Positions 40,914 through 43,872 of a stretch of DNA of 64,000 bases are shown here, piece after piece (positions within the stretch are counted from its first letter, which is position 1; each line of letters starts with the position of its first letter). The notes below the pieces were generated by a model that made no database searches, was not told where the DNA came from, and worked only from the letters and a program-made list of their open reading frames with translations. The stretch lies in sequence record PV037725.1. One strand, given 5' to 3'. Both the position numbers and the translations under genes were made by a program.

Positions 40914-43154
40914 ATGAAACATCTCAAATCTCTGAAGTCTGTACTCAAAGCTACCGCCGCTGATCATCAAACTTTCTCCATGGAAGGTTTCGTGTCTGGC
41001 ATGAAGAAAGAAGACACTCTGGCAGATGGTCTGTTCTCGGTTGCTGAACGCGCCGAAAGCCTGATCGAATCGATCGGTACCGAATCGTTCGGTGCCAAGC
41101 ATGACGACGCGCAAATTGCTGTTGGTCTGTACAAGCAAATCTCGAAAATCGCACGTGACTACGGTTTCGAATCGTACCTGTCCGCTGACGCACGCGTTGC
41201 CGAGAACCAACTGACCGCTGCTGTACTGGGTGCCCTGGCTGCAACCAACACCACCAAGTACATCAAAGCCCTCCGTGGTGTATCGAAAATCGTTCCTTCG
41301 AACGAAGACATCAAAACCATTACCCAGAGCTATAATGGCCCTGCTGGTGGTCTGGACGTATTCACTGGTGACGAAACCAAAGCAGTAGCTCTGGAAAACT
41401 ACAACGAGAAATCTCAGCGCGACTTCCGCGTTGTAACCGTTGGTTATAACCTGGCTGCTAGCCGTCAGGACGAGTTCGCTGAACGTATCTACCCAACCAC
41501 CGTTATCAACCCTATCGAGGGTGGTGTGGTTCAGGTATTGCCTTACATCGCTGTAATGAAAGACGTTCATCACCAAGTTAACGGCGCTCGTTGGAAGAAC
41601 GACGAAGTGAACATGGTAGAAGCATACCGTGATCCGTCGATCCTTGACGACAACGCTACTGACCTGATCCCAGCTATCGATCCAGCTGGTACCAACGCAC
41701 AGTACTTCGCTGACCCAGCTCTGATTCCTCCAGAAGTTGTAGTTAACGAACAAAACCTGTCCATCGAAACCGCTCCTCTGAAGCCTGGTATTCGTCTGGA
41801 CCTGATGGGTAACTCCAACGCCAACCAGCTGATCGCTGCTAACATGCTGGACGTATCGGACACCATCGACCCTGCTGGTCGCCTGAAAGCTCTGTACATC
41901 AAGTTCCAAGGTAAAGTTATCAAGTTCAAAGTAGACCGCATGCCACGTGCTGTGTTCCAACCTGACCTGATCGGCGATACCCGCGGTGCCAAAGTTGACT
42001 TCTGGACCGATGACCTGACTGTATCTGCTGTAACCCGTACTATCGATGGCGTTCAAACTGCCGCGATGACTGAGCTGGAAGCTCGTGGTTGGGTACTGCG
42101 TCTGAGCGTAGACTTCACTGGTAACGTTTCCACTTCTCGTGGTGACAGCCGCTTCACTAACGGTGATGCTTCGATCTCTAAGATCCTGAACGCTGACCGT
42201 CGTGAAATCGACACCACTGCTGGTGACGGTAAAGTCCTGGTAGATACCATCACTGATCTGGAAATTGTTGGTTTCGAACTTCAAGTTCGCTTCACTAACA
42301 CTAACCGTCGTCAGCGTGGTCACCTGCTGCAAACTCGTGCTCTGCAATTCCGTCACCCAATCCCAATGCACGCTCCAGTGACTCTGCCACTGAGCACCAT
42401 GGAAGATGAAGGTCCAGGCGAAGTTGTTAAAGCTCTGACTGTTAACACCAACATCCGTAACAGCAACAACGCTGTTAAGACTCTGTTGAACTACCTGGCT
42501 CAACTGCGTGAGCTGACCGGTAACGGCTTCAACCGTCCAGTCATCAACGTGTACGAAGGTGCTCTGGCCGCTGTAATGCGTCCGACCTACCACTACGACA
42601 CCATGCACCTGCCAGACATGATCGACACCCTGAAGTCGAAAGACCGTTGGGACGACGTTTGCTCGGCCATCCTGAACAAAGTTAAAGGTATCCTGTTCCC
42701 AGCATACCGTAACTCGAACATCGAAGCTGCCTTCCGAGTAATCTCGGGTAACCAAGACGAGCGTCCGATCTTCCTGTTCTGCACCGACAAAGAAATCGCC
42801 AACTACCTGATGACCAAAGGCGACGACCGCACCCTGGGTGCTTACCTGGAATACGACATCGTATCCACTAACAACGAACTGTTCGACGGTAAGTTGGTAG
42901 TAGTACCTACTCGTAAAACTCCAGTTGAGAACGACATCCTGAGCTTCGGTCAGTTCTTCTACGTTTCGACCATCATCGCTGACCTGCCTATCACTCGTGG
43001 TGGCAACCAGGTTACTCGCGAGATCGCTGCGATTCCATTCAACCTGCACATCAACAACGTTCCGTTCGCTATCGAATTCGACGTTACTGGTTTCGAACAG
43101 GTAATGGGTCACTCGATGTGGAACAAACCAGTGGTTGACGCCCTGGCTGCCTGA
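40914..43154 (+). CDS. Major capsid protein (phiKZ gp120-like)
   Basis: 746 aa; strongest codon bias in the window; propeptide with SME, GTE, GFE and ALENY motifs; RQDEFAERIYPT and C-terminal PFNLHINNVPF typical of phiKZ-like capsid proteins. Confidence 0.9.
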   Translation: MKHLKSLKSVLKATAADHQTFSMEGFVSGMKKEDTLADGLFSVAERAESLIESIGTESFGAKHDDAQIAVGLYKQISKIARDYGFESYLSADARVAENQLTAAVLGALAATNTTKYIKALRGVSKIVPSNEDIKTITQSYNGPAGGLDVFTGDETKAVALENYNEKSQRDFRVVTVGYNLAASRQDEFAERIYPTTVINPIEGGVVQVLPYIAVMKDVHHQVNGARWKNDEVNMVEAYRDPSILDDNATDLIPAIDPAGTNAQYFADPALIPPEVVVNEQNLSIETAPLKPGIRLDLMGNSNANQLIAANMLDVSDTIDPAGRLKALYIKFQGKVIKFKVDRMPRAVFQPDLIGDTRGAKVDFWTDDLTVSAVTRTIDGVQTAAMTELEARGWVLRLSVDFTGNVSTSRGDSRFTNGDASISKILNADRREIDTTAGDGKVLVDTITDLEIVGFELQVRFTNTNRRQRGHLLQTRALQFRHPIPMHAPVTLPLSTMEDEGPGEVVKALTVNTNIRNSNNAVKTLLNYLAQLRELTGNGFNRPVINVYEGALAAVMRPTYHYDTMHLPDMIDTLKSKDRWDDVCSAILNKVKGILFPAYRNSNIEAAFRVISGNQDERPIFLFCTDKEIANYLMTKGDDRTLGAYLEYDIVSTNNELFDGKLVVVPTRKTPVENDILSFGQFFYVSTIIADLPITRGGNQVTREIAAIPFNLHINNVPFAIEFDVTGFEQVMGHSMWNKPVVDALAA

Positions 43155-43241
43155 GATGGAAAGGGTAACTACCGTTACTTTGAAGATGGTACACGCATCC
43201 GATACGAAGAGGACGGCGTTGCCCGCCGACTAGAGCGGTAA
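43155..43241 (+). CDS. Putative UGA read-through extension of the major capsid protein (28 aa)
   Basis: In frame after the TGA: DGKGNYRYFEDGTRIRYEEDGVARRLER then TAA; terminator lies only after the second stop. Confidence 0.6.
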   Translation, partial: DGKGNYRYFEDGTRIRYEEDGVARRLER

Positions 43242-43249
43242 CACTAGAA

Positions 43250-43281
43250 CATACTGCCAGTCCTTCGGGACTGGCTTTATG
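43250..43281. terminator. CATA-hairpin-TATG element
   Basis: CATA ct GCCAGTCC TTCG GGACTGGC tt TATG. Confidence 0.85.
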
Positions 43282-43365
43282 TTGTCTTTTACCTTAATAC
43301 AAATTATTTCAAATTTATATCATGATTGTGTAATTAATATCAATCCTTAACCAAAGGACCCGATC

Positions 43366-43872
43366 ATGAGCTTCTTAGCGAAATATTGGAATGCTGTTGA
43401 ACGAGCTGTATCTGAAACCGGAATGAACCCAGGTGACATTATCGTTAACATCGCAGAGGTGATTAAAAATACTGAAGTGCATGATGATGTAGACTTCCAC
43501 GTGAGTAATATCCCTGATCCTAAACAAACCACTACACCGGCTAACGCTGGTTCTATGCCCCATCGTAAACCTGACATCGGTGCTATGGAAGAAGCTGCTC
43601 GGAGGGCGGCTAGACCAGGCGAAGAATTCGACCAGTTGGAAGAAAGACTCACCTGGCCAAAAGCCAAAGTACGATCCGTACGAGACACAATGGCAAAGAC
43701 AGACACCGAACGGCCCAAAGCTAGAGGTAAGACGTCCAAAGCGATTCGTAAGGCCGAGCGCAAGAAACTGAAGAAGCTGGGTGGTGGTAGAAAAGTGAGG
43801 TTGGTTATTGACGAGGTACGTATAAATGACAGAGCAGTATGGCCTAAGCCCTCGGCAGACCATAGACCATAA
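43366..43872 (+). CDS. Hypothetical protein with Lys/Arg-rich C-terminus
   Basis: SD AAAGGA; KARGKTSKAIRKAERKKLKK; AT-rich promoter region upstream. Confidence 0.65.
   Translation: MSFLAKYWNAVERAVSETGMNPGDIIVNIAEVIKNTEVHDDVDFHVSNIPDPKQTTTPANAGSMPHRKPDIGAMEEAARRAARPGEEFDQLEERLTWPKAKVRSVRDTMAKTDTERPKARGKTSKAIRKAERKKLKKLGGGRKVRLVIDEVRINDRAVWPKPSADHRP

Follow-up and report, generated by a model that had tools for sequence, protein, structure and literature searches.

The window analyzed here is a stretch of 64,000 nucleotides (nt) of the genome of Pseudomonas phage Viktualia (PV037725.1, with 100% identity over the 1 kb compared; window coordinates are record coordinates minus 186000), which is a close relative of phage 201phi2-1 (93% DNA identity over the 1 kb compared). 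Its major capsid protein, 94% identical to gp200 of 201phi2-1, is encoded by a gene that ends in UGA. Directly behind this stop, the capsid frame stays open for a short stretch, hereafter referred to as the tail, whose counterparts in related phages lie in the same frame and behind the same stop codon. Comparison of these relatives indicates that the capsid gene is probably subject to programmed UGA read-through, which would give rise to a minor, tailed isoform of the capsid protein.

The open frame had been pointed out in an original prediction made from this sequence, and its description holds: the capsid gene ends in GCC TGA, frame 0 remains open from 43155 to 43238, and the next in-frame stop is the TAA at 43239-41. 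The 28-residue peptide is also internally periodic, as had been claimed, with an R-x-x-E-x-G spacing that occurs twice, nine residues apart, and a third time in incomplete form. At least 28 open codons follow the stop in 17 of the 64 annotated window genes; an extension of this length is not beyond chance in one genome, and its significance therefore comes only from relatives. The choice of stop codon alone is no evidence either, a caution already expressed in the prediction, since TGA ends 12 of the 64 annotated genes (the capsid gene and 11 others); TAA accounts for 67%.

The sequence 3′ of the capsid stop was compared among the GenBank phages 201phi2-1, PS119XW, Phabio, PhiPA3, Psa21, D6, RVTF4, phiKZ, and Noxifer, about 20 IMG/VR contigs, and further contigs reached via protein look-ups. 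Stop-codon and antisense counts refer to 25 distinct sequences, whereas codon tabulation, start-codon counts, and stop counts in the forward frames refer to 22 lineages; a separate protein alignment of the tail comprised 23 sequences, adding Noxifer, L047, and L048. In all 25 distinct lineages, which span at least nine named phage groups with capsid protein identity down to about 57%, a homologous stretch of 24 to 30 codons follows the capsid stop without a gap, sharing the capsid frame and lying behind TGA. The first stop is thus TGA without exception; the second is TAA in 16 lineages, TGA in 6, and TAG in 3, and even Viktualia and 201phi2-1 do not share the same one. The base that follows the capsid TGA is A in 18 lineages, G in 6, C in 1, and T in none. 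Capsid genes of relatives that lack the tail end in TAA (18/18), and the association between stop type and presence of the Arg/Glu/Gly tail is strong (Fisher P = 1.6e-9, with no correction for phylogeny). None of 120 database capsid protein cluster representatives carries the tail fused to its C terminus. Since TGA is kept and fused versions were not found, the stop has been neither lost nor hardened.

The peptide itself is also conserved. Four columns are invariant in the 22 lineages as well as in the 23-sequence alignment (Arg 7, Glu 10, Gly 12, and Gly 21), each encoded by two to four different codons, with all four Gly codons being seen. Arg at position 16 and Glu at position 19 are present in 21 of the 22 lineages, the former alternating between CGN and AGR codons. 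Differences in tail length amount to whole codons throughout, and mean pairwise identity reaches 46% in the tail versus 24% over the 12 C-terminal residues of the capsid protein. When used as a tblastn query, the tail matched 62 records, solely at this position and solely in Pseudomonas phiKZ-like phages. The tail is annotated as part of the capsid gene in none of these records, and only two have any annotation over it, in each case a tiny hypothetical coding sequence (CDS), namely, Viktualia (in the +1 frame) and the PS119XW-like HPP-Temi. No Pfam family matched the tail at E values up to 1, no solved structure was retrieved below an E value of 0.78 in a PDB profile search, and no second copy was detected when a tail profile was run against the six-frame translation of all Viktualia pieces. 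Among the capsid protein homologues, four (P0032, P0033, P0038, and P0039) are labeled “virulence-associated protein VapD” by JGI, which looks like a misannotation.

Synonymous and nonsynonymous differences were then counted in ten roughly independent sister pairs, in all three forward frames. Frame 0 displayed 93 synonymous versus 130 nonsynonymous differences, corresponding to a nonsynonymous-to-synonymous ratio (pN/pS) of 0.48 and a significant synonymous excess (P = 8e-8). The two shifted frames gave pN/pS ratios of 0.87 and 1.60, with no synonymous excess. Stops interrupt the +1 frame in 21 of the 22 lineages and the +2 frame in 18, and frameshifting of the T7 gene 10 type was rejected on these grounds, the extension being in frame 0. 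An antisense open reading frame (ORF) was discarded as well, as the three antisense frames contain stops in 24, 13, and 12 of the 25 lineages. The GenBank record places CDS0407 over the end of the capsid gene and the tail; because the +1 frame that it uses is not conserved and has no synonymous excess, it is probably a false gene call. The original prediction had interpreted the stretch as a product of UGA read-through and had proposed to check relatives for a conserved stop, a conserved frame, a bias toward synonymous changes, and hairpin covariation, of which the first three were borne out. The stop is conserved in all tail-bearing lineages, the frame is the same throughout, with indels of whole codons only, and the bias is present in frame 0 alone, which together argue for read-through of the capsid UGA at the level of sequence evolution.

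In the mechanism that we propose, the capsid UGA would be deliberately leaky. Most ribosomes would terminate there and release the normal capsid protein, while a minority would insert an amino acid at the UGA, most likely via a near-cognate host tRNA, which is favored because the phage encodes no suppressor. These ribosomes would continue for 24 to 30 codons up to the second stop, located just before the transcription terminator, and the product would be a minor capsid isoform about 3 kDa larger than the normal one. Its tail would be made up of a short Arg/Glu/Gly unit present in two and a half copies, and the Glu-Asp/Asn-Gly turns in the peptide suggest that it could fold into a small β-hairpin meander. 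A long stem-loop predicted in the tail-coding mRNA, 8 nt past the UGA, may raise the level of read-through, and low-level read-through would be kept by selection. Translation past the UGA, its level, and the structure, location, and function of the tail are all elements that we infer.

Read-through could also be unavoidable at this position without producing a functional isoform, the downstream sequence being shaped only so that the by-products do no harm or are rapidly broken down. The capsid gene is translated very heavily, its product being the most abundant protein of the virion with about 1,620 copies per phiKZ capsid (PMC11297242), and the tail has poor codon usage and neither a detectable domain nor a paralogue, as would be expected of such a by-product. 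However, TAA or tandem stops would offer an easy remedy, and TAA is indeed what ends most window genes and every tail-less capsid gene, yet TGA is retained in each tail-bearing lineage. Moreover, four residues that are invariant across the clade exceed the needs of a neutral sink. We thus consider a harmless by-product to be unlikely.

Structures that could form in the mRNA behind the UGA were also analyzed. The local 8-bp hairpin with two G-U pairs on which the original prediction had relied does exist in this sequence, but its conservation and covariation failed, with 55% of cells pairing compared to 55.7% in shuffles, and it was therefore ruled out as a conserved stimulator. The long imperfect stem-loop is a different structure, predicted within the extension, and most lineages show it in their minimum-energy folds. 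When 16 lineages were folded as single sequences, all z-scores were negative (mean of -1.98), and the native fold was more stable than peptide-preserving randomizations in 23 of the 25 lineages under one of two null models and in all 25 under the other. Its core pairs include bases that are fixed at codons 3, 6, and 23. When pairing was evaluated in a fixed register, 68% of cells paired compared to 66.0% in shuffles, and 16 of 500 shuffles reached the observed value. The RNAalifold consensus was weak (-3.3 kcal/mol), and an Rfam search of positions 42900 to 43500 at E values up to 10 returned no match, SECIS-like or other. The folding predictions suggest, at most, a stimulatory long stem-loop after the UGA.

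The same region could instead function as an untranslated RNA element at the 3′ end of the capsid mRNA, involved in its stability, processing, or termination, with the peptide pattern being incidental. The recurrence of the long stem-loop, the advantage of native folds over peptide-preserving randomizations, and the bases kept where the amino acid varies (third base of codons 3 and 6, second and third bases of codon 23) are in line with such an element, as is the near identity of Viktualia and 201phi2-1 over the final third of the stretch and on through the spacer to the terminator. None of this accounts for a synonymous excess limited to frame 0, for Arg codons that switch between CGN and AGR, for the use of four Gly codons at invariant Gly columns, or for indels of whole codons. 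The stretch is also invariably tied to the capsid frame and to TGA, and neither Rfam nor the RNAalifold consensus lends weight to a shared structure. A purely untranslated element hence appears improbable.

An even less probable explanation is that the stretch represents a separate micropeptide gene, translated from its own start or by re-initiation after the UGA. Some lineages do contain an in-frame ATG, GTG, or TTG inside the stretch, and the GenBank record calls a tiny CDS here, though in another frame. In-frame starts are nonetheless absent in 13 of the 22 lineages, including Viktualia, and their position is variable in the others. In addition, a separate gene would need neither the capsid frame, nor direct abutment to the capsid stop with no intervening stop, nor TGA as that stop.

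An ARAGORN scan of the whole Viktualia genome, read piece by piece, detected no UGA suppressor tRNA; the genes that it did retrieve are those for Leu(taa), Ser(tga), Asn(gtt), and Tyr(gta), together with a degenerate one resembling tRNA-Phe. The tRNA-Phe(gaa)-like gene is located outside the window on the minus strand, at record positions 78800 to 78882 (L045:28800-28882), where it adjoins tRNA-Ser. It has an abnormal anticodon arm, scores 26 bits with Rfam, which is below threshold, and probably corresponds to the tRNA0003 missing from the record numbering. Genes for a tRNA splicing ligase, an RNA ligase, and a tRNA-His guanylyltransferase are likewise present in the genome. The presence of tRNA genes and tRNA-repair enzymes could evoke a dedicated decoding of UGA, through a phage suppressor tRNA, code reassignment, or selenocysteine. 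We give this very little credence, given that the tRNAs found are ordinary apart from the degenerate gene, that TGA ends 11 other genes with no sign of reading on in the window, the region examined for this, and, for selenocysteine, that no SECIS-like or other Rfam match was obtained and the local hairpin is not conserved. Finally, a chance ORF devoid of function, to which the open frames behind other window genes might point, is refuted by the conservation of stop, frame, and peptide.

Several considerations weigh against programmed read-through itself. The case for translation past the UGA is an evolutionary one, and the lineages compared share ancestry, so that the P values overstate their independence. 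Codon usage in the tail is unlike that of the capsid gene (index of 0.275), and the overall pN/pS is only moderate because about half of the columns vary freely. At three columns, bases are fixed despite a varying amino acid, beyond what the peptide explains (G at the third base of codon 3 and C at the third base of codon 6, both in 21 of the 22 lineages, and NCC at codon 23 in 20 of 22). Covariation in the long stem-loop is weak, with 16 and 40 of 500 shuffles reaching the observed values, and in bacteria there is little documentation of 3′ structures stimulating read-through. Published cryo-electron microscopy (cryo-EM) models of phiKZ stop at residue 747 of the capsid protein. The tail is also unmentioned in the open-access literature searched; no prior description was found there, in agreement with the original prediction, which was aware of no such report for phiKZ-like capsids.

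The structure of phiKZ provides an indication of where a tail would be located. The phiKZ capsid protein was modeled to residue 747, and its C-terminal arm lies on the capsid's outer face, where it touches the external decoration protein gp244 at the vertices (PMC11297242). Because this arm is external in phiKZ, the tail would point outward and, by analogy, would be displayed outside the capsid near the centers of the capsomers. In our view, six tails at one capsomer center would probably clash, which could explain why only a fraction of subunits may be tailed. The unidentified chains in the phiKZ capsid map were excluded as candidates for the tail since they are found on the inner surface.

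The closest parallel to the proposed isoform is the A1 protein of the levivirus Qbeta. In this phage, a leaky UGA ending the coat gene gives rise to a minor, C-terminally extended coat protein present at low copy in the capsid; no dedicated tRNA is needed, and the extension, about 200 residues long, forms a folded domain known to act in infection. The capsid gene of Viktualia would share the leaky UGA at its end and the minor C-terminally extended isoform, as far as can be deduced from sequence. In contrast, Qbeta is a small single-stranded RNA phage while the phages studied here are jumbo phages with double-stranded DNA (dsDNA) genomes of 280 to 320 kb, the extension would be limited to 24 to 30 residues, and there is no sequence relationship between the two. 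Read-through in several eukaryotic RNA viruses is stimulated by an extended 3′ stem-loop or pseudoknot located about 8 nt past the stop. The arrangement behind the capsid UGA is similar, with a spacer of about 8 nt followed by a long structure within the read-through coding sequence, but those viruses use eukaryotic ribosomes, and the structure here is predicted only, with weak covariation.

Coat protein extensions can also be produced by programmed frameshifting, as in gene 10 of T7 and T3, Lactobacillus phage A2, and Listeria phages A118, A500, and PSA (PMC5009743). These systems likewise yield two capsid proteins with distinct C termini from one gene of a dsDNA tailed phage, the longer form being the minority (PMC5009743). 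They differ in using a -1 or +1 shift at slippery sites, several of them adding Ig-like domains, whereas the jumbo-phage tail, placed behind a stop, keeps to frame 0, the other frames being closed. Like the Ig-like (Big_2) decoration domains appended to structural proteins of phages, the tail would be an optional surface module at the exposed C terminus of the capsid protein, but no Pfam domain is found in that of the window, whose length falls far below what an Ig fold requires.

Other additions were noticed at the end of related capsid genes. In a metagenomic lineage (L027:3409-4023, also L063 and L064), the capsid gene closes with a linker rich in Gly, Asp, Thr, and Pro, then TGA, and is followed in frame by a 201-codon ORF that begins with a Big_2 Ig-like domain (E value of 4e-9). 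An ATG occurs at the third codon past the capsid TGA, and this ORF could be either a read-through decoration domain or a separate gene. A second tail family, unrelated to that of Viktualia, is present in Goslar (L042:1730-1819), PCH45 (L052:1599-1748; same in L058), and Moabite (L066:1590-1643), in which the capsid gene ends in TGA and is followed by 28, 48, and 16 in-frame codons, respectively, encoding an acidic peptide with a shared Gly-Phe core. The Goslar and PCH45 tails align with a Smith-Waterman score of 41, reached by 3 of 5,000 shuffles, and did not match each other by BLASTP; the two capsid proteins share only 26% identity across the ~530 to 580 C-terminal residues that align. Further relatives of Goslar in IMG/VR were limited to near-identical copies. 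Among the relatives whose capsid gene ends in TAA, many (L025, L028, L029, L037, L065, L050, L051, L054, and L067) have constitutive low-complexity C-terminal tails that are rich in Gly, Thr, Asp, and Pro, with Pro often being the last residue. The exposed C terminus of the capsid protein seems to be a hotspot for lineage-specific additions.

The 3′ end of the capsid mRNA is defined by an intrinsic terminator (Table 1), whose hairpin lies 101 nt past the TGA and 14 nt past the TAA. It is therefore nearer to the second stop than to the first, as had been proposed, although the distances originally quoted (95 and 8 nt) depend on the chosen start of the element. Terminators of the same type had also been placed 0 to 11 nt past the preceding stop; of the three others measured in the window, two agree (6 and 11 nt) and one does not (20 nt). 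A T-run is found 25 to 55 nt beyond the second stop in 24 of the 25 lineages. Between Viktualia and 201phi2-1 (window 43215-43300 and L002:2315-2400), the DNA is almost identical from the final third of the extension through the spacer and terminator, while many sites differ in the first two thirds of the extension. From the sequence comparison, this near-identical 3′ portion hints that the region near the mRNA 3′ end is under additional constraint at the nucleotide level. Approximately 30 to 50 nt past the terminator, all lineages carry a conserved AT-rich motif ending in TATATTAC or TATATCAT (window 43305-43325; L002 to L009), which is probably part of the promoter of the next gene.

Table 1. 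Features at the 3′ end of the Viktualia capsid gene (window coordinates)
Feature	Coordinates	Strand	Remarks
Major capsid protein gene (746 codons + TGA)	40914..43154	+	PhiKZ_MCP family, PF25620
CDS0407 of the GenBank record (32-codon ORF, +1 frame)	43135..43233	+	Stops in 21/22 relatives, no synonymous excess; probably a false gene call
Proposed leaky UGA stop, next base G here	43152..43154	+	TGA in 25/25 tail-bearing lineages
In-frame extension, 28 codons + TAA (tail)	43155..43241	+	Homologous in 25 lineages
Local 8-bp hairpin, two G-U pairs	43162..43181	+	In this sequence; outside the minimum-energy fold
Predicted long imperfect stem-loop within the extension, 8 nt past the UGA	43163..43224	+	Recurs in minimum-energy folds of most lineages
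Intrinsic terminator (8-bp stem, TTCG loop) and T-run, ends the capsid mRNA	43256..43281	+	Hairpin at 43256-75

phiKZ and 201phi2-1 are model nucleus-forming jumbo phages whose capsids have been examined by mass spectrometry and near-atomic cryo-EM. If capsid-gene read-through does occur in these phages, an unrecognized minor isoform of the main building block would be present on the outer surface of every such capsid, adding a new component to models of assembly, decoration, and intracellular trafficking and providing a rare example of programmed read-through among dsDNA phages. More tentatively, and with a probability that we judge to be rather low, read-through of the capsid gene might be a family-wide device that has been used repeatedly by the Chimalliviridae, with at least two unrelated tail families, and a third lineage that may have an Ig-like domain behind its capsid UGA. 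A fixed small fraction of tailed subunits would then serve a step particular to these phages, such as capsid trafficking, docking at the phage nucleus, or decoration of the capsid exterior.

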